A program made the translations under genes and the position numbers. From Oculina patagonica (Eukaryota): DNA of 64,000 bases. The stretch spans positions 3,534,001-3,598,000 of the forward strand of contig NC_135771.1 in assembly GCF_052425735.1 (NCBI RefSeq), given 5' to 3'. Positions within the stretch are counted from its first letter, which is position 1, and each line of letters opens with the position of its first letter. This document shows, piece after piece, positions 6,801 to 58,898 of the stretch. The notes beneath the pieces were generated by a model, which ran no database searches, was not told where the DNA came from, and saw only the letters and a list, made by a program, of their open reading frames with translations.

Positions 6801-7671
6801 ATATAATACAAGTTGTTGCTTCTTAGCAATGAAGAAATATCTAAAATTGAGAACATAAACCTTTAAAAACATCCATGAACATCCACGAGCTTCTCTAGTC
6901 CTTCATGAACTAACTAATCTGCAACGTAGTTGTTGTGGTTTAATTTTTTCTTTGGTTAAAAATTTTTCAAACCAGTTTGATTTTTATTTTTCATTGTCTT
7001 ATGTTCATTAACATAATCTCAAACAAAGGGAAATAAAAATCAAACTGGTTTGAAAAATTTTAAACCAAAGAAAAAATTAAACCACAACATAGTCCACGTC
7101 TTGGCCTATAAACGCCTCCATAACGAATACACGACTCACTCCACGGTTTTGAAAGCACGTGTCAAATGCCCGGGGGTCAACCCGAGGTATGCAAATGCCC
7201 CACCCTTGGGACGGGCAATATTAGGAAATGCCCCGCGGTTGCCCGGGGGGGGGGGGGGGGGAAGCACTGCTGGAATTGACTGATGCATAACATGGAATGG
7301 CCCACAATAGCTTATGTACAGTACATTACTTATCAACACTGAATATATAACTTCATATCAGTGTTACGTATGGAGGTCTCAGGATAAATGACTTTGGCTG
7401 ACACTTATACATCTGATCATGACTCCCAAGAGTCTGCTAATGAAAGTTTCGCCGCCTTTATATTAGACACCTATCTCGTGGTAACCCCAGTTGCACGTTT
7501 CCACTCAGTGAATTTTTTTTTTCGTATTAACCTTATTGCCAAACTCACCTCTGATGGAGAGCCAAACGTAAGACCCACGGCAGGGGCACCATCAGCAAAG
7601 CATCTTCTAAATAACAAAGATCCTGGTTGTCTAAGAAGACGAGAAGTTTGACGAGAAACTAAACCCAACAT
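3850..7671 (-). CDS. ATP5F1D: Mitochondrial ATP synthase F1 subunit delta, 4 exons, 162 aa
   Basis: Exons 7549-7671, 5465-5615, 4774-4862, 3850-3975; all GT-AG and phase-consistent (489 nt). Arg-rich transit peptide, then LTFGSP..VKQVDV..GSFGILPNHVPTL..SSGTVTINADSTVQILAEEAHPLD..AKAQIAVE, typical of F1 delta. Confidence 0.96.
4423..4640. mobile_element. Short non-autonomous TIR element (CAACCC(T)CCAAGTT...AACTTGGAGGGTTG) in ATP5F1D intron 3
   Basis: Terminal inverted repeats; flanks TTAAT/GTAAT (near 5-bp TSD); same family as 17367-18618. Confidence 0.7.
6368..7288. mobile_element. Non-autonomous TIR element with a nested SINE, in ATP5F1D intron 1
   Basis: ~25-bp TIRs ATGCATCAGTCAATTCCAGCAGTGC / GCACTGCTGGAATTGACTGATGCAT; internal CAAATGCCC motifs. 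Confidence 0.8.
6493..6746 (+). mobile_element. tRNA-derived SINE (V-SINE-like core)
   Basis: Pol III A box TGGTGCAGTGG and B box GGTTCGATTCC, followed by non-tRNA core GGGTTTTTCTCCGGGTTCTCCGGTTTTCCTCC; second copy at 30495-30744. Confidence 0.85.
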
Positions 7672-28611: not shown

Positions 28612-31077
28612 ATGCGTGCTGTTGTTGTACAACTGCTGGTTGCCTCGCTTTCGTCCTTGGCACTTACAGAGGGCTCAAGAACAATATGCCAGCGGCCACC
28701 CGCGTGGACGATCAATCAACTGAACCCAATGGCTGAAGCGCGATCAAAAGGTCACGTGGTAATCTTGGGATTGATGCTTGCCAGCTGACGATTTTGTCAG
28801 TGGCAGGCTGAGCGCTTGAACCTCATGTATAAAAAAATTGTTGTGAAGAGGTAAGATGCGAGAAATGCCTTGTCAGTTGCGTGTGTTAAAAAAAAACTGT
28901 CTGATGCCACGACTTTTCTTCAACGCTTTTTGACTTGACCACAGGCAGACCACCCTATGTGTTCGTGGTTAATAATTGTTGCCATAAATAAGATTATGTT
29001 GAAATCAATGGCGCATATAGAAGATATATAGAGAAACATTACGTCGGCTAGTGTGGCACTTTTGTAGAGCTGCGTGCCGCAAATTAAGAAGGAAAGGGGG
29101 GGGGCCGTTAAAAAAATTTTTTTTGGGGGAGGTTTTTTTATAAAAAATTTTTTTTTTTTTTTCTTATTTTTCAAAAAAAAAGGCGAGTTTTTTTTTTTAT
29201 TTTTTTTTTTTTTCGATTTACTACAAAGTCGACGTAATGTTTCTTTATATATCTTCTATATGCGCCATTGATTTCAACATAATCTTATGTCAAAAATTAT
29301 TAACCACGATCACATAGGGTGGTCTGCCGGTGACTTGACTTCCGTTGCTGCAAAAGCCGCACAACGTTTTCAAGCCTCAAACCCCAAACTTGAAATGCCC
29401 CTCTATTCGATTTCAAGTGAAAAATCTTTCGGTTGGCCAGGTTGGGAATTCGAGTTTACTATGAGCTACTTTATTCTTACAATAACAGAAAAGTAATGCT
29501 GGTTTTGAAAAAAGAAAGAAGAGTTTACAATTATTGTTATCCATCGGAAATACACGAGCAATCAGTAGCAGGATACGCCCAACATTTTGTAAAGTAACCG
29601 TAGAGTGAGTAGGTTTAATTTTCTTAAAATTCTGCTGCACTGCGCGTCTGCTGCGAAGCTCTTGTTTAGGCCACCGCGCCTTGCACAAGAAGCAAATGTG
29701 CTAATTTTCTAACACACTATCACTTTAATTTCCTTACTACAGGAATATCACTGATATTTCTTTCATGATTCTGAACATGAAAAAAGCCGCAGCCTCGATC
29801 TCTGAGTTAGAAAGGAGAGTCTCGTTCCCAGTCTACCAAGAGCCAGCCAATCGAGACATCATGGCAATGCTGGGTGGAAAGAAAGACGACATGTTGATCT
29901 ATGATCGATGTGGACTCTTAGTTCATCACTGGAAGATGCCCCTGAGCTATATGGGATATTCATTTGTCTGGTAATTAATTTAACAAGCTCTGCATTTTAC
30001 TTTTTCGGAGATCCGTATGCAACCATCGTCCCAAAATCTACTTCAGGCTAAGATGGCCCCACTTATTATACCAAGGCATGAGAGATGCGTTGGCCTAATG
30101 CATGGTTAGTGCGCTGGACTCTGGATCGAACGGTCTGGGTTCGAGCCCTGGCCGGAGTCATTGTATTTTGTTCTTGGGCAAGACACTTTACTCTCACAGT
30201 ACCTCTCTCCACCCAGGTGTATAAATGGGTACCCCGGCGAATTGTAGGGGCAACTTGACAGAATGCTGCAAAGTAACTTGCGGTGGACTAGCATCCCATC
30301 CAGGGGGGGGGGGGGGAGGGAGGAGCGTAGCAATACTCCTAGCTGCTTCATGTTACAGAAACCGGAGTTACGTGCCGAGAGCTTTGAGTCAGTTGAGCTT
30401 GAAAGGCTTTACGTTTTCGTTGCTAAAGGAACAGACGTAGTAGCGCAAAATATGAGAACTTTATACGTACGTGGAAATTAATTCTTAATTGCCAATCAAA
30501 TCAACTTTGTTTTCGAGGGGCACGAGTCTTCGACGACAACCGTGGCCCCGGATCCCGACGAATTGGAATTTAGAAGTGTTGGTTTTGTGGAGGGAGGAAA
30601 ACCGGAGAACCCGGAGAAAAACCCCGGAGCAAGGACGAGAACCAACAACAAACTCAACCCACATATGGTATCTGGCAGGAATCGAACCCGGACCACATTG
30701 GTGGGAGGCGAGCGCTCTCACCACTGCGCCATCCCTGCTCCCCCAAAATACCATTTTTAGATATTTTCACTTGATATAGGAGAGAATTCGTAAATTCAAA
30801 AAGCTTTGTTTGTGTTCCCAGGAATTCCTTAGTGAACGTTTATAACAACAAGATTCCAAATTGTCAGCCACATTGTCCAACAACCGCCATGACCCAGTCC
30901 CCGACAACCATGCCTATTACGTCACAAGAAGTTTCAACCAATCCCACTTCAGAAAGTGCTACGTCACAGCCTCGACTTGAAACTACGACTAGGTCGTCAC
31001 CCGTGACAACGAAGGAAACATTCAACAGTAACGGAGTAAACCAAAGGAATGTAACAAGCGAAGACGAAACGCCATAA
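28612..31077 (+). CDS. SELENOP: Selenoprotein P-family protein, single Sec (U59 in a URFC motif), 3 coding exons, 240 aa, Thr/Ser/Pro-rich tail
   Basis: Exons 28612-28850, 29743-29970, 30822-31077 (phase 2/2). Signal peptide, CQRPPAW, GHVVILGLMLAS-TGA(28786-28788)-RFCQWQAERL, FPVYQE, LGGKKDDMLIYDRCG: SelP N-terminal domain hallmarks. SECIS downstream. Confidence 0.93.
28940..29332. mobile_element. Palindromic TIR element with 7-bp TSD in SelP-1 intron 1
   Basis: ~110-bp inverted arms (CACAGGCAGACCACCCTATGTG / CACATAGGGTGGTCTGCCGGTG); TSD ACTTGAC; the centre is homopolymer-rich. Confidence 0.8.
30080..30412 (+). mobile_element. tRNA-derived SINE with CORE-like body, SelP-1 intron 2
   Basis: A box TGGCCTAATG..GG, B box GGTTCGAGCCC, then CTTGGGCAAGACACTTTACTCTCAC..CCACCCAGGTGTATAAATGGGTAC. 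Confidence 0.8.
30495..30744 (-). mobile_element. tRNA-derived SINE with the same head and core as 6493-6746 but a different tail
   Basis: Minus strand GGGGAGCAGGGATGGCGCAGTGGTGAGAGCGCTCGCC..GGTTCGATTCC; near-identical to the 6.5-kb copy for ~185 bp. Confidence 0.85.
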
Positions 31078-31307
31078 AATAGATAAATATTTTATTCCTT
31101 AAGATTAATTTTTGAGTGTCGTTTAAGTGTATTTTAATAGCATAGTAATTTTTATTCGCCAGGATAACTTTGGCGCCCAAGTTTTTTAATCTGGAAGCTT
31201 TGTTAAAACATGACAAGCAGACAAAAAAGTGAAAGTTGTTTGTTTCGATGAAAATCGACAAAGTGATAGAAAGAAAAGCGTCACGAAATAATTTTAATTT
31301 TTCTGAC

Positions 31308-31374
31308 AGCTCTTGACTCCTGAATGACGAAGTTGCATGAAACCATTAACGTGCTACTTTTGATGGTTGGAGCT
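31308..31374 (+). promoter_or_regulatory. SECIS element of SelP-1
   Basis: ATGAC (31324) / TGAT (31361) quartet; helix II GAAGTTGCATG / CGTGCTACTTT (11 bp, one mismatch); apical loop AAACCATTAA; helix I AGCTC / GAGCT; ~230 nt after the stop. Confidence 0.9.
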
Positions 31375-49823: not shown

Positions 49824-50813
49824 ATGTCTGACCTCAAAAACAGAAGCGGAGGACTAGAACCTGGGGAAGCCTTCAGCAAGCCGGTTTATTACGTCATCGC
49901 GGGTGTGTACGCGCTTCTCGCTGTCACAGCACTCAGTCTGAACACGCTCGTGCTTGTCGCGTTCGTTAGAGACCGCACTCTTCGCACGCCCTCCAACAGG
50001 CTGATTTTTAGCATAGCCGTCGGTGATTGGCTACATTCAGTGCTGGCATATCCCTTGGGAGTGGTCAGGAATGCGTCACAAAGTTGGCGCATGAGCGGTG
50101 CAACATGCACGTGGTACGCCTTCATTACAAGTTTCCTATCATTCAGCATCATATTACACTACGCTGTATTCTCTGTAGAGCGAGCTATCACCATTAATTA
50201 CTCCGAGACCCGGTTCTCCATTAAACGAAAGCTCAATTTCGTCATTGGCGGACTTTGGACATTCGCCTTGCTTTGGAGCCTTTTCCCACTGTTCGGTTGG
50301 TCAGCGTACGTTCCTGAAGGCGCAGGCGTGTTTTGTTCAATTCGCTGGCAATCTTCCCGCCCACGTGACATTGTTTTTATAGCATGTATATTCTTGTTCT
50401 TCTTTTTCGTACCCATCGTTGTCATGGTCATCGCTTACTCTTCGATTTACCTCAATATGAGGAAAATGACTCGAAATGCGCATGGCATGTGGGGTGAGGA
50501 CGCTGCTCCTACTGTGGAAGCTATTCAAGCAGAAAGAAAGACCGCACGCATGGCATTTATGATGTCAATTTGCTTCTTATTTGCATGGACACCGTATGCC
50601 GTGGTTTCACTGTATGCTATCATACTAATGCCGGAGAATATTTCCCCGGTGGTGGCCACCCTACCCTCACTGTTTGCCAAAACGGCGACGTGTTATAATC
50701 CAGTTATTTACTTCCTGTTGTACAAGAAATTCCGGGATAGCCTGGGGCAGACATTACGATCATTATGTGGACGCTTTATGAAACAAGACTCAAGTGCCTT
50801 AAACTGGCTGTAG
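49824..50813 (+). CDS. Opsin (cnidarian/anthozoan type), intronless CDS, 329 aa
   Basis: 7TM class A GPCR: LRTPSN, YVPEGAGVFCSIRW, FLFAWTPYAVVS, PSLFAK(286)TATCYNPVIY with the retinal-binding Lys (bovine K296 equivalent). A splice acceptor at 49791-49792 suggests a 5' UTR intron. Confidence 0.95.
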   Translation: MSDLKNRSGGLEPGEAFSKPVYYVIAGVYALLAVTALSLNTLVLVAFVRDRTLRTPSNRLIFSIAVGDWLHSVLAYPLGVVRNASQSWRMSGATCTWYAFITSFLSFSIILHYAVFSVERAITINYSETRFSIKRKLNFVIGGLWTFALLWSLFPLFGWSAYVPEGAGVFCSIRWQSSRPRDIVFIACIFLFFFFVPIVVMVIAYSSIYLNMRKMTRNAHGMWGEDAAPTVEAIQAERKTARMAFMMSICFLFAWTPYAVVSLYAIILMPENISPVVATLPSLFAKTATCYNPVIYFLLYKKFRDSLGQTLRSLCGRFMKQDSSALNWL

Positions 50814-53816: not shown

Positions 53817-56800
53817 ATGGCGACGGGAATATTGAAATTTCTCGTCGTCGCACTTCTTGCTGTGACGCTGTCGAGTTCGACTTCCACCTGACAGTGACAA
53901 TGACAACTGCCAGACCTGGGTCCAGTCCCCAACGACCGGGCAGATGGGTCCGTGGTAGTCCTGGGGATGATAAACTCCGAATGACAACACAACATCTGAT
54001 GACAGGCCGACTGTCGCGTCCAGGCCACTGAGAAAATGGCTCAGATGCGACAAGTCGCCAGTGACAGGTACAAATATTTTCTTTGCTTGTTTATTAAGTT
54101 ACTGTCTTTCGCACCCACCATTTCGGTCGAATGAGGGCTCTTGTTGGTAGAAGCACGCTTAATAATGCGTGCCATCGCGCATTGTATTCTCACAGTTATC
54201 ACATCTGTTACTTAGCCTAAAGCCGGTAAAGCTGCTTGGTTATTTTTTTAGAAACTTATAAAAGCGAAAGAATCTCACCAAAATGTTTGGAATGAAAACG
54301 ACTTTTTAAATTAACTCAGGGAGTATTTTCTTGAAGAATGAATTTCAAGTTCCAACATGTATTTGAAAAATTGCCGAGGAAGCCAAACCAAACTTGGAAC
54401 AAGAGCTTCATATAATTTTTAGGTTTTCTCATATTGTATTATCACCATCGTTGCTCATCCTCAGTTCCTGACGTGTTTCTGTCATTTGCCCCCGGGGGGG
54501 GGGGGGTACTCCCATAAATTTCGGATAGGGGTGTGCCGCCAAGGTTCTTTAACCCTGACCCTATTTAAGGATAAAGAAAGCGAAAATTGATACCCTTTTA
54601 AAGGCCCAAAACCGAAAAATGACACCCTATTCAAGGGGAGGAGAAGCGTTCCATGACGACCCAAATAACGGCTAACCGCGCACGGCAACATACAAATCTC
54701 TATAAAATCGCTTTACTAATACAGTAGAACCCCGGTAACTCGAACTCGGATAACTTGAACAACCCCGCTAACTCGAACATACTTCCATTTCCCTTGGATT
54801 TGAACTCACTTTTAAGTCATTTTTACTCGGTTAACTCGAACTCGGATAACTCGAAAACCCCGCTAACTCGAACTAAATTTCATTTCCCTTGATCAAAATT
54901 TGGGTCAAATTTACCCCGATAACTCGAATTCCGGTTCTTGCAACTCGCCACGGTTGCCCATTTATTAGAGCAACAAAACAGATCACCTATTTGACAGCCT
55001 TTTTCCACTCTTATCCTAAAAATTTATGATCGTATTAGAGTTTCTGACGAGATAAGTTTAATTTGCACTGTGCTGTATACTGAGGTGCTGGAAAATCAGT
55101 AAGCTATCAATTATTAACTTGGCAAATTAAATATTCAATCTACCCCGATAACTCGAAACTCCGCTAACTCGAACGGTTTTTCGTTTCCCTTCAGAGTTCG
55201 AGTTACCGGGGTTCTACTGTAACTGAACAGTAAATTCAGTTTTAAAATACCTTTTTTTGGTTTAGCTGGGCGTTTATTTTAACTTATAGAATTTAGGTAC
55301 CCTATCTAAGGATCACACCGGGAACTCATTGCCAAAAGGAGCAAAAATGATACCCTATTTAAGGACCGAGAACCTCAAAAACCATACCCTATCGGGCGGC
55401 ACATACCTATATAGGCCACATATGGGAGTACCCCCCCGGGCATTTGCCAAACACATTTTTTGTAAAACTTGGACATTATTAGGTCTCCTAGAGGCCTGCT
55501 TCTTGTTCGAGATCCGATAAAAGGTGATAGAGGGTTCAATTTCTCTTGTATTACGTTTTGTGGAGTTTGAGATTGGTCCAAATCAAAGCTGGAGAACAGA
55601 AAACACCGAAAAACTGAAACATCATAAAACTGAGCAACAACCACTAAAAAGACATCAGCAGCTGGGTCGGTTTGTTCAAAGCACAATTAAGCAAAGCCAG
55701 GTTTAGAATCAATTTTGATTTCACCTTTTTAACTTTTCAGTGATGATTTCTGTTTATATCTTCAGTCCTCCAGTTTAAACGTCAACTAGTCTCAAACTCC
55801 ACAGAACATAAGCAGTGAATAAGGAAAACACTTTTATACAAGAGAAATTGAACCCTCGATCAACTTTTAACCCAGGGTTAGTGCTAATCGGCTTTCGGAC
55901 AACCCGGCCTGTAATCAAAATTTACGCTTATCCTGGATTAACTTAATCGTGCTTCGAACAACCCGGCCCCGATGTTATTTTTTGTGGTCTCTCTCGCATT
56001 TTAGTGTATTAATCCCTGGGAAACTGAGCTTGTCATTGCTGATAATGTTCTAACATGTTTGCATCGTTTCTTTTCACAGCAACATGCCCGACATTGTCTT
56101 CATGACAGTAGTTGGCCAGGGTGTTTTCACGCAGCCATGGAATCAAACTGATGACATGTTTGAGGAGCCTCAGCCAGGTCTGTTGTCTAAAATCTTAGGG
56201 GATAAGACAAGTGGAATGTTTGTTTATAATCGCTGTGGAAGCCTTGCAGGAGAACTTCAGTTGTTCCCGTTGGTGCCGTTAGATCCTTCGGAAGTGACAA
56301 ATGAATGGTAAGTCTGTTTATTAGTTTTTCCGGCTATGTCTAGCAACGGAAAATTCTGCTCTGTTGTCACGGAGATTTCGCAGATTTTTGGCCTAAACCG
56401 CCCTGAAATTAGTGAAAGGCACCTAACCCATAAATCACAATATCTTTGAACATCTGAAGGAAGATATAACCTTAATTTGCGGGTAGAAATCAAGCTACGG
56501 CTATAGATATTGTTTTTTTTAAAGACGTGTGGAAACAATTTGAAAACGTTTGCCGAACGTTTTCATATTGCAATCCGTTTCCATCCGCGCCATCCGCAGC
56601 CAAAGATGCCCGTTAACAGTTTTAGTGCTCTAATATAGCCATTTTTAATAAAAATGGACTATTATTCTAGATTTCATGCGAAACAAACATAAATTTTGGA
56701 TGTTCAAAAATCTGGTAAAATTCGTGACATAGTCCCTTTAAGCAACATATAAAACCAAAATGGCGACATATACCTATAATTGACATTGGCTTGGACCTCC

Positions 56801-57135
56801 ATGAAAGTTGCAATAATAGTTTTGTGTTCTATTAGTTTTAGTTATTCTAGATTTGTCATTGGCCATTTGCTCTTTGTGTTGGTTATTCGTGTAGGTCTGT
56901 TTGTATTCGCTTTCTCAAGTAAGTCTCAGAAGTGTCTCGATTCTTCAAGCGATAATTCGTAACCCAAACATCTCTACACTGGCTGCTCTGGAATCTCTAA
57001 AACTTAATTTTCTTTGTGTTTCTCAACAGGAACATCATCAGAAAAGCCTACAATAAGTGCCCGCAATGCAACAAACCAGCGCCAACCACTCCAACACCTC
57101 AACCTGAAGACGAGACAACTACCAGTCCACAGTAG
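53817..57135 (+). CDS. Divergent selenoprotein P-family paralogue with six in-frame TGA codons (putative Sec), 3 coding exons, 194 aa
   Basis: Exons 53817-54067, 56080-56307, 57030-57135, with the same phases as SelP-1 and an identical 228-nt middle exon. Translation: MATGILKFLVVALLAVTLSSSTSTUQUQUQLPDLGPVPNDRADGSVVVLGMINSEUQHNIUUQADCRVQATEKMAQMRQVASDS NMPDIVFMTVV...LGDKTSGMFVYNRCG...EW NIIRKAYNKCPQCNKPAPTTPTPQPEDETTTSPQ*. TGA at 53889, 53895, 53901, 53982, 53997, 54000. Two SECIS-like elements downstream. Confidence 0.85.
54491..55440. mobile_element. CCCGGG-terminal MITE with 8-bp TSD, SelP-2 intron 1
   Basis: TSD CATTTGCC at 54483-54490 and 55441-55448; same terminal design as 16631-17055. 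Confidence 0.88.
54722..55219. mobile_element. Tc1/mariner-type MITE nested in 54491-55440
   Basis: TA|CAGTAGAACCCCGGTAACTCGAAC...GTTCGAGTTACCGGGGTTCTACTG|TA; many TAACTCGAA subrepeats. Confidence 0.9.
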
Positions 57136-57320
57136 TTCAAAATGCGAAGGAATAAATTTATAGGTTTTGTAGAGTTACATTAATTATGCTAATGATTAAT
57201 TAATCGTATTTTGTTACTGTCATCTCAATTGTAACCGATTCGAAACTTGTGAACACGTCCGTCTTAGAACATAGGAAAAATGTCAAAGGCAACCTGATTT
57301 TCGTGTTAACAAACTTGTTC

Positions 57321-57564
57321 TAGAGCGACTTTCAATTGGCTTTCGTAAATTCAAAACCAGGCTCAACACAACAAACACAAATAACGCTATGAACCAATCA
57401 GAATTCTGAAAAAAATTCATGCAACACGTGCCAAGCGCGGGAAATCGCGCGGGTTGCCAAATGACGATTGGTTTCGTTCCCACTCTTGATTGGTTAACAG
57501 AAATAAAGTCTTTCTCTGATTGGTTAAAGCACTTTTTGTAGATAGTCAATTGAAAACCGTTCTA
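57321..57564. mobile_element. Dispersed palindromic MITE family member in the SelP-2 3' UTR
   Basis: TAGAGCGACTTTCAATTG...CAATTGAAAACCGTTCTA with CCAATCA/TGATTGG motifs; relatives at ~14250-14555 and ~63155-63514. Confidence 0.75.
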
Positions 57565-57732
57565 CTACGGATAGAAACAAATACTCAAGCGAGATTTTTT
57601 ATTCAAATCAAGTAGTTTCTTTCTTTATATTTGACATTATTATATACGCGGAATCGTATTGCCTTTTTAAACGCGTCACGGGTGCGAATATCAGGAGAGA
57701 GAGGGAAAGTCTAAGTTCCAGCACTAGAAACA

Positions 57733-57796
57733 TGATGACTTATGAAGAACAAGCGGCAAAAAGTTTTAACTGTTTGTTTTGATGGTACGGTCATTA
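57733..57796 (+). promoter_or_regulatory. SECIS element 1 of SelP-2
   Basis: Helix I TGATGACT / GGTCATTA; ATGAA (57742) / TGAT (57780) quartet; helix II GAACAAGCGG / CTGTTTGTTT (10 bp); apical AAA at 57758. Confidence 0.85.
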
Positions 57797-57844
57797 ATTT
57801 TCTGCTGAGAGCTAAGAAACAGAACATTTCATTGTGAGTTCTCT

Positions 57845-57912
57845 GACTGGTTTGTATGACGAGCTTACAGTAAAGGTAATTAATTGTAAGTTTTTGAATT
57901 TTTTTACCAGTC
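57845..57912 (+). promoter_or_regulatory. SECIS element 2 of SelP-2
   Basis: Helix I GACTGGT / ACCAGTC (perfect); ATGAC (57856) / TGAA (57895) quartet; helix II GAGCTTACAGT / ATTGTAAGTTT (11 bp plus one extra T); apical AAA at 57872. Confidence 0.85.
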
Positions 57913-58898
57913 TACTCGCACATGAAAGGAGTGAGATTTCAGAACGAATTTTGTGCCCTGGTGTTACGTTGTAAAAGAGGTAATAAAATCGATTCTTATA
58001 AAATACTGAACATTCCTGTATTTGATAGTGTTGTACGAAAAACCCCTTTTCGGCTCTCAGGGGCGTCTATCGATTGGATTCTAGGGTACGTCTGCTTTTG
58101 CAGGCTACTATGAAAGTTGTTAGAAAGAAAATAATAATAAACAGTTACTGAACTATAACATTTCAGTATAGGCATGGAGGATGGAAAAATATCGATAGTT
58201 TTGTTTCATACTTTTCGACATTGGTGGATTAAAAAACCCGCGCGTGCGCGCCGCTCGTGCGATGGCTGTTGATTGACAGACGGCGCCCTTATATCCAATC
58301 AGATTGTGAATAGACTAGTGCCAATAAAATACCCAGTGACCCAAAAGTTAGAAGGCCTGGAAGAATTATACACGCCCGGACTAACTTTAAGTTACTAAGT
58401 CTAGCGATGTGCGCTTTAATTTTAAACACAACAACAGCAGTAAGGTGGACTGCTCTACATAAAATCATTTCAAAGAAACTTAAAAAGGTCTTGCGCAATA
58501 AAAATATTAGTCATGTACTGGGACGCGTTTTCATTGACAAGTAATTAACATGAACAAATTAATTTAAGACAACAGACAAAATCAGTATTTGCCATCGAAA
58601 ATACTACTTTGGTAAACTGTACTTTCGTCCTTTTTGTGTCCAAAGACGTTTAACAGTGGATTTCGGTACATGGTCGTAACGTTGATATGATTGGCTGATT
58701 TATGTAATGGGCCCACTCACAAGCCTCTTGAAAAGAAAAAGTTGCGTTGTCTGAACAGTGAATTTCTCTACACAACATCGATTAACTAAGTGATCACCAA
58801 AATTGAATGGTCTAAATGCTCAAACAAATTCTCTCAACTGGCTTTATAGGAAATGTTTTGAGGCCAGTTAGGAGAATTTCTTCTTTGCCTGTGGAGCA

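Follow-up and report, generated by a model that had tools for sequence, protein, structure and literature searches.

A pair of probable SECIS elements in the 3′UTR of a six-UGA gene of the stony coral Oculina patagonica has a counterpart behind a one-Sec SelP neighbour

Results

The window (by which we mean the whole 64,000-nt stretch of Oculina patagonica DNA that was analysed) contains, on its + strand, a gene of three exons and 195 codons in which six TGAs lie in frame, all of them in exon 1. Exon 1 (53817-54067) encodes a signal peptide and the six TGAs in the arrangement UQUQUQ ... U....UU, as read from its translation and from the spliced joint to 56080; exon 2 (56080-56307; 228 nt) encodes a diverged SelP N-domain core (..FVYNRCGSLAGELQL..), and exon 3 (57030-57135) closes with the stop codon TAG at 57133-57135. 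Exons 2 and 3 are without TGA, and thus the gene has no Sec-rich C-terminal domain. The 3′UTR (57136-58011, + strand; about 850-875 nt) is covered continuously by RNA contigs. An AAUAAA poly(A) signal, which an earlier note on this DNA had located at 57982, was found at 57982-57987 and is present in all five of the species with sequence that far.

Splicing of this gene was seen in public sequencing runs, which we took as RNA from their records: the exon 1/exon 2 joint (GT..AG) was found in two runs and the 56307/57030 joint (also GT..AG) in three. Because both joints are present in the public contigs, which come from three organisms, we consider these contigs to be cDNA. Past 58011, contig depth fell from 1724 to 11.5 in run X5 and from 2882 to 2.4 in run X7; continuous cover up to ~58011 followed by this drop indicates that the message ends just 3′ of the AAUAAA, with the two hairpins described below inside it, while the contigs do not pin its exact 3′ end. 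Unlike X5 and X7, run X1 yielded, over 57641-58300 and beyond, a contig (1210 nt) that passes the poly(A) site and leaves the stretch; read-through could account for it, as could genomic DNA present in that run or a next gene that overlaps this one. In run X7, 13-A loose ends also follow 57415, where the UTR has an A-run upstream of both hairpins; they may reflect a longer A-tract in the species of that run, or else early polyadenylation at a minor site, which would yield SECIS-less transcripts. The same part of the UTR carries a CCAAT-box-like cluster (57395-57530, + strand), with one CCAATCAG and three TGATTGGTT in ~135 nt and a low identity across species (0.52-0.65).

The product of the six-UGA gene is matched by the NCBI protein ACROYT_G042984 (Oculina patagonica), whose first residue is the Met that follows the last TGA and which lacks part of exon 2, suggesting that a probable six-UGA selenoprotein has been mis-annotated as a 97-aa hypothetical protein. 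A second gene, a canonical one-Sec SelP, lies 22.7 kb upstream on the + strand (exon 1 from 28612, stop codon at 31076-31078, UTR to ~31500). It reads CQRPPAW ... LASURFC, with its single Sec in LASURFC and without a Sec-rich tail, and it is the sole match to Pfam SelP_N in the genome (E 1.4e-17). Pieces of the six-UGA gene and of its orthologues gave E 0.08-0.2 with SelP_N (PF04592), below the cut-off. Exon 2 of the six-UGA gene shares 37% identity over 30 aa with the one-Sec SelP (E 0.007) and has the same length (228 nt). A genome-wide protein search with exon 2 returned only the six-UGA gene itself, the paralogue being too diverged for the first-look filter. The 37% identity, the equal length of exon 2, the tandem position and the homologous SECIS elements are in favour of a descent of the six-UGA gene from SelP.

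Two + strand hairpins, A (57733-57796) and B (57845-57912), lie in the 3′UTR of the six-UGA gene with a gap of 48 nt between them (57797-57844). In hairpin A, helix I (57733-57740 with 57789-57796) has 8 bp; the AUGA at 57742-57745 and the 3′ GA at 57781-57782 flank a helix II of 11 bp (57746-57756 with 57770-57780), three of which are G-U pairs, and the apical loop (CAAAAAGUUUUAA; 13 nt) starts with CAAAAA and has its AAA at 57758-57760. Hairpin B is built from a helix I of 7 bp (57845-57851 with 57906-57912), an AUGA at 57856-57859, a helix II of 11 bp (57861-57871 with 57883-57893), a 3′ GA at 57896-57897 and an apical loop (AAAGGUAAUUA) with AAA at 57872-57874. The spacing from AUGA to the apical AAA is 12 nt in both. 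These observations bear out, position by position, the earlier description of twin hairpins 48 nt apart with AUGA, a helix II of 10-11 bp, an apical AAA, a 3′ GA and helix I. Both hairpins have the attributes of a eukaryotic SECIS, namely an AUGA/GA quartet, a helix II of ~9-12 bp, an unpaired AAR in the apical loop or bulge, ~10-13 nt past the AUGA, and a helix I below the internal loop. Their placement, in the 3′UTR of an mRNA with in-frame UGA, is also that of a SECIS, as judged from the spliced contigs, the UTR cover and two contigs (L010 and L013) that are single transcripts with the six-TGA CDS and both hairpins.

Predicted fold energies were -18.3 kcal/mol for A (z -3.7) and -19.1 kcal/mol for B (z -3.4), the z values being relative to dinucleotide shuffles. 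RNAalifold, given seven species and no structure, recovered both hairpins, and its consensus extends each of them by a basal stem. The stem under A (~57715-57730 with 57798-57812, + strand) is also present in the single-sequence fold, and some of its pairs survive two-sided changes (alignment columns 31/126 and 41/118); the stem under B pairs 57828-57839 with 57914-57926 (+ strand). Basal stems longer than helix I appear under each hairpin in the fold of a 241-nt context as well. The apical loops are 11-13 nt long in the window and 10-15 nt in orthologues, and with such an open loop and no conserved third helix, A and B look, on our reading of the loop sequences, like form 1 SECIS elements. 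A covariance model made from hairpin B gave hairpin A just 14.3 bits, and the stem sequences of the two differ.

We then scored the region with the Rfam model SECIS_1 (RF00031), whose 64 positions were matched end to end by both hairpins, at 27.4 bits for B (57847-57910) and 19.0 bits for A (57735-57794), with AUGA, helix II, AAA and GA all in register. Both scores are under the gathering score of this model (35 bits); an Rfam scan at the gathering threshold gave no match in the 64-kb window, and A and B surfaced only at E-value thresholds. SECIS scoring, which had been proposed as a check on the hairpins, thus returned matches to the expected family at scores short of its cut-off. Since the reported E-values are multiplied by 4227 families, we divided this factor out ourselves; for a single family the values are ~9e-5 for B, with the whole window searched, and ~3e-4 for A, with 1.2 kb searched. 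No Rfam family other than SECIS_1 fitted the hairpins better in the Rfam scan. Over the whole window, SECIS_1 had two matches of at least ~23 bits, hairpin B and 31315-31374, both on the + strand and both directly behind genes with in-frame TGA.

To place these scores, we considered the SECIS_1 matches found outside the window in the same genome, among the 129 of ~10,600 first-look candidates that were scored in a genome-wide search. A SELENOF/Sep15-like gene has matches of 35.4 and 28.8 bits and a SelW/Rdx-like gene one of 25.6 bits; because the matches behind this genome's other selenoprotein genes range from 25 to 35 bits, the Rfam cut-off of 35 is not a useful divider here. Related copies score higher than those in the window: the A-type element reaches 31.8 bits in the orthologue L018, and the B-type element 34.2 bits in L025, which is of the paralogue type. 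B-type copies in the six-UGA orthologues have 21.1-23.8 bits (Rfam), and in L018 the B element, at 21.1 bits, is below the A element. As a side observation, the two matches of the SELENOF-like gene, at G000:C1:34711250-34711315 (L008 7751-7816; 28.8 bits) and 34712052-34712115 (L008 8553-8616; 35.4 bits), lie ~740 nt apart on the same strand, and could mark a second two-SECIS gene or two neighbouring genes.

A second, simpler search used a descriptor with five requirements: ATGA; one base further on, the start of a helix II in which 9 or more of 10 positions pair; an apical AAR; a GA that follows the helix after 1-2 nt; and a helix I in which 6 or more of 7 positions pair. On both strands of the window it found exactly four sites (31210, 31324, 57742 and 57856), all of them in the 3′UTRs of the two SelP-like genes, which both have in-frame TGAs; 30 dinucleotide shuffles gave a mean of 0.07 sites. 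The descriptor was composed once the candidates were known, which weakens this result somewhat, and its rules are the canonical ones. We also built two covariance models, R1 and R2; with an effective sequence number < 2 they are narrow, and since they produced modest cross-matches together with several spurious palindromes, we count them as minor support only.

Next, we examined conservation in other corals. Exon 2, used as a protein query, identified 17 relatives, and their contigs supplied transcripts or genomic loci of six or more further taxa. Every orthologous transcript that reaches exon 1 has the six TGAs at the same places, with variation in the adjacent codons (UQUQUQ versus URURUQ, and an in-frame insertion in L016), and the six TGAs together with the downstream frame are maintained in at least four other species. 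In six corals the best conserved block of the last exon is 57701-57981. Mean identity to the window was 0.60-0.68 in the proximal UTR, 0.73 in the coding part of exon 3, 0.84 in hairpin A, 0.80 in the spacer, 0.86 in hairpin B, 0.81 in the 3′ flank and 0.45 downstream of the poly(A) site. The basal stems explain a large part of the conservation in the spacer and at the start of the 3′ flank. The AUGA, GA and AAA of both hairpins are invariant in the seven-species alignment and also in three paralogue-type copies. A repeat or transposon origin was considered for the hairpin block and rejected, as the genome has just one copy of it.

The stems are kept as well. In the seven orthologues, 94% of stem cells were paired, compared with 31-46% when the partners were slid. 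Covariation among these seven was no higher than in column shuffles, as the taxa are closely related, and this set therefore speaks for conservation and not for covariation. We then counted helix II pairing in motif-anchored tables of 10 sequences drawn from both paralogue groups. In the A type, 98 of 100 helix II cells formed a pair; position 10 had GC or AU, and positions 1 and 9 had GU, AU or GC. In the B type, 99 of 100 did so; here position 4 had CG or GC, position 10 GU or UG, and position 7 AU, GU or GC. Such two-sided, pair-keeping changes between the paralogues imply that the stems have been maintained as stems since the gene duplication. The covariation that had been suggested as a check is thus at shuffle level within the orthologues, and the pair-keeping changes are those between the paralogue groups. 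Hairpins A and B are both taken as probable SECIS elements on their SECIS_1 matches, their folds, the core motifs kept across species and the kept pairing of helix II. The unlike stems (cross-score 14.3 bits) and the separate preservation of each element support the view that A and B are old, separate elements and not a recent duplicate, in agreement with what had been proposed for them.

The one-Sec SelP gene carries a pair of its own in its 3′UTR (31210-31374, + strand), with the core of the first element at 31210-31248 and the second element at 31315-31374. Both match the descriptor; the second has 25.9 bits with Rfam, and the first has 20.6 bits with model R2, no Rfam match and a weak fold (z -1.7). 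Orthologues of this gene in other corals likewise have one Sec, no Sec tail and paired elements (L025: 25.3 and 34.2 bits, with ~72-73 nt between the matches; L024: 23.1 bits with our own model and 28.0 bits with Rfam). Between the two genes, the A elements are homologous, and the B elements likewise. The pair had been regarded as characteristic of multi-Sec SELENOP mRNAs and thus as tied to the six UGAs. This part of the earlier proposal has to be given up: since the one-Sec neighbour and its coral orthologues share the pair, it is a family trait rather than a mark of six UGAs, and since the neighbour's pair is homologous, the pair predates the six-UGA state.

Discussion

Our results lead us to conclude, with a probability of about 0.88, that hairpins A and B are functional eukaryotic SECIS elements in the 3′UTR of a three-exon, secreted, SelP-derived gene of a stony coral. 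If they are, as is very probable, real selenocysteine-insertion signals, the six UGA "stops" of this gene are read as selenocysteine. With all six TGAs conserved in frame among the orthologous transcripts, the hairpins provide good, independent support for recoding; the idea that they testify to it independently of the coding sequence has stood up well, as they obey the SECIS rules, lie inside a spliced mRNA and are kept in at least six other corals. The genome also carries tRNA-Sec(TCA) and SepSecS. In this reading the pair was inherited from the ancestral coral SelP gene. From what is known of SECIS function, the AUGA/GA kink-turn core of each element would bind SECIS-binding protein 2 (SBP2). 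SBP2 would in turn deliver eEFSec, loaded with Sec-tRNA(Sec), to ribosomes that have paused at the exon 1 UGAs, which lie 1.0-1.1 kb 5′ of the hairpins in the mRNA, and these six codons would be decoded as selenocysteine rather than as stop. In this scheme, we infer from the known systems that SBP2 binds and that Sec is inserted, and so too any sharing of tasks between A and B.

Other explanations of the pair have to be weighed. It is unlikely, in our estimate, that only one of the hairpins, the likelier being B, acts as a SECIS and that the other has begun to decay or has taken on a new role, such as binding a different kink-turn protein or stabilising the mRNA. A single SECIS suffices for most selenoprotein mRNAs, hairpin A has 19.0 bits to the 27.4 bits of B in the window, and the A-type element of the paralogue is the one without an Rfam match and with a fold z of -1.7. 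Against a loss of function in A stand its conservation, which is about that of B (0.84 versus 0.86), the invariance of its AUGA, GA and AAA in seven species and three paralogue-type copies, and a helix II that stays paired through GC/AU and GU/AU/GC changes; in L018, moreover, the ranking is reversed, with A (31.8 bits) outscoring B (21.1 bits).

Still less probable is that both are conserved 3′UTR structures with a non-selenocysteine role, such as localisation, stability or a small-RNA precursor, and resemble a SECIS by coincidence. Conservation does span the whole 57701-57981 block, beyond the hairpins, yet the conserved flanks partly pair as basal stems; and although A and B both score below the Rfam cut-off, no other Rfam family fits them better, the positions that never vary coincide exactly with the SECIS core motifs, and the four descriptor sites of the window all lie behind the two genes with in-frame TGAs. 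We give hardly any credence to the idea that A and B arose by chance in AT-rich DNA and that the TGAs belong to a dead gene. Beyond the sub-threshold Rfam scores nothing points that way, whereas four sites were found where shuffles predict 0.07, the gene is spliced and expressed, and no fewer than four other species retain the six TGAs and the frame downstream of them.

Two SECIS elements on one 3′UTR are the classic pattern of SelP mRNAs, and mRNAs of single-Sec selenoproteins usually have one; in human SELENOP, SECIS 1 is of form 2. The coral gene resembles vertebrate SELENOP in having two distinct tandem SECIS elements on one 3′UTR, which are old and not recent duplicates, and in encoding a secreted, probably SelP-derived protein with several UGAs. 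It differs in that it has no Sec-rich C-terminal tail and its six UGAs lie in the N-terminal exon, in that its elements are just 48 nt apart (12 nt with the basal stems) and both form 1-like, and in that its product is a diverged paralogue barely recognised by Pfam SelP_N. With respect to Rfam SECIS_1, the full model is matched, but 19.0 and 27.4 bits are below its gathering score of 35, as is also the case with other selenoprotein genes of this genome.

The closest precedent is in amphioxus, where Bf.SelP_a (one Sec, two SECIS) stands in tandem with 3NSelP (extra N-terminal Sec, two SECIS) (Jiang et al., 2012; PMC3473315), that is, a one-Sec SelP beside a copy with extra N-terminal Sec, each with two SECIS elements. 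In 3NSelP, however, Sec was gained by triplication of the whole Trx-like domain and two C-terminal Sec are also present, whereas the coral gene has one domain, with a UxUxUx cluster directly behind the signal peptide and a U....UU where the redox motif lies. For the anthozoan Nematostella, one study found no SelP (PMC3473315), and another described a SelP homologue in which Cys replaces Sec (Lobanov et al., 2008; PMC2397514); it is an anthozoan SelP N-domain homologue, as the coral genes probably are too, and the coral genes use Sec and paired SECIS elements. A search for two SECIS elements on one 3′UTR has already been used to find SelP genes (PMC2397514), and it is possible that coral SelP SECIS pairs have been described earlier.

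The pair matters as the non-coding half of the case for a six-selenocysteine protein from a mis-annotated coral gene. In corals, two SECIS elements accompany SelP genes at any Sec count, and the number of SECIS elements should therefore not serve to predict multi-Sec decoding; as a signature, the pair helps annotators to locate such genes in cnidarian genomes. It is also a compact natural system for the role of the second SECIS, with two distinct elements in ~210 nt and with UGAs that either adjoin or have a single codon between them. A wider reading, which we put forward tentatively and regard as rather doubtful, is that stony corals have an old, separately kept form-1 SECIS pair on SelP genes without a Sec-rich tail, the one-Sec gene included, so that the role of the pair would be other than serving a C-terminal Sec run, and that in the diverged paralogue it was co-opted for the processive decoding of packed N-terminal UGAs (UGA-N-UGA-N-UGA after the signal peptide, UGA-UGA at the redox motif). 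If true, such co-option would amount to a second, independent route to a multi-Sec SelP.

Some further features were seen in and near these loci. On both strands of 6950-7070, a long near-perfect hairpin matched several plant and animal miRNA precursor models at up to 48 bits, all far under their cut-offs, and is probably an inverted repeat or MITE. In another coral, a Pistol ribozyme model gave 30.7 bits (cut-off 34.5) at L025 704-740 (+ strand), upstream of the SelP gene. An intronless ORF of 329 aa at 49824-50813 (+ strand) of the window resembles a rhodopsin-type receptor, and a 7tm_1 gene lies near the SelP orthologue in L025, which together suggests conserved synteny.
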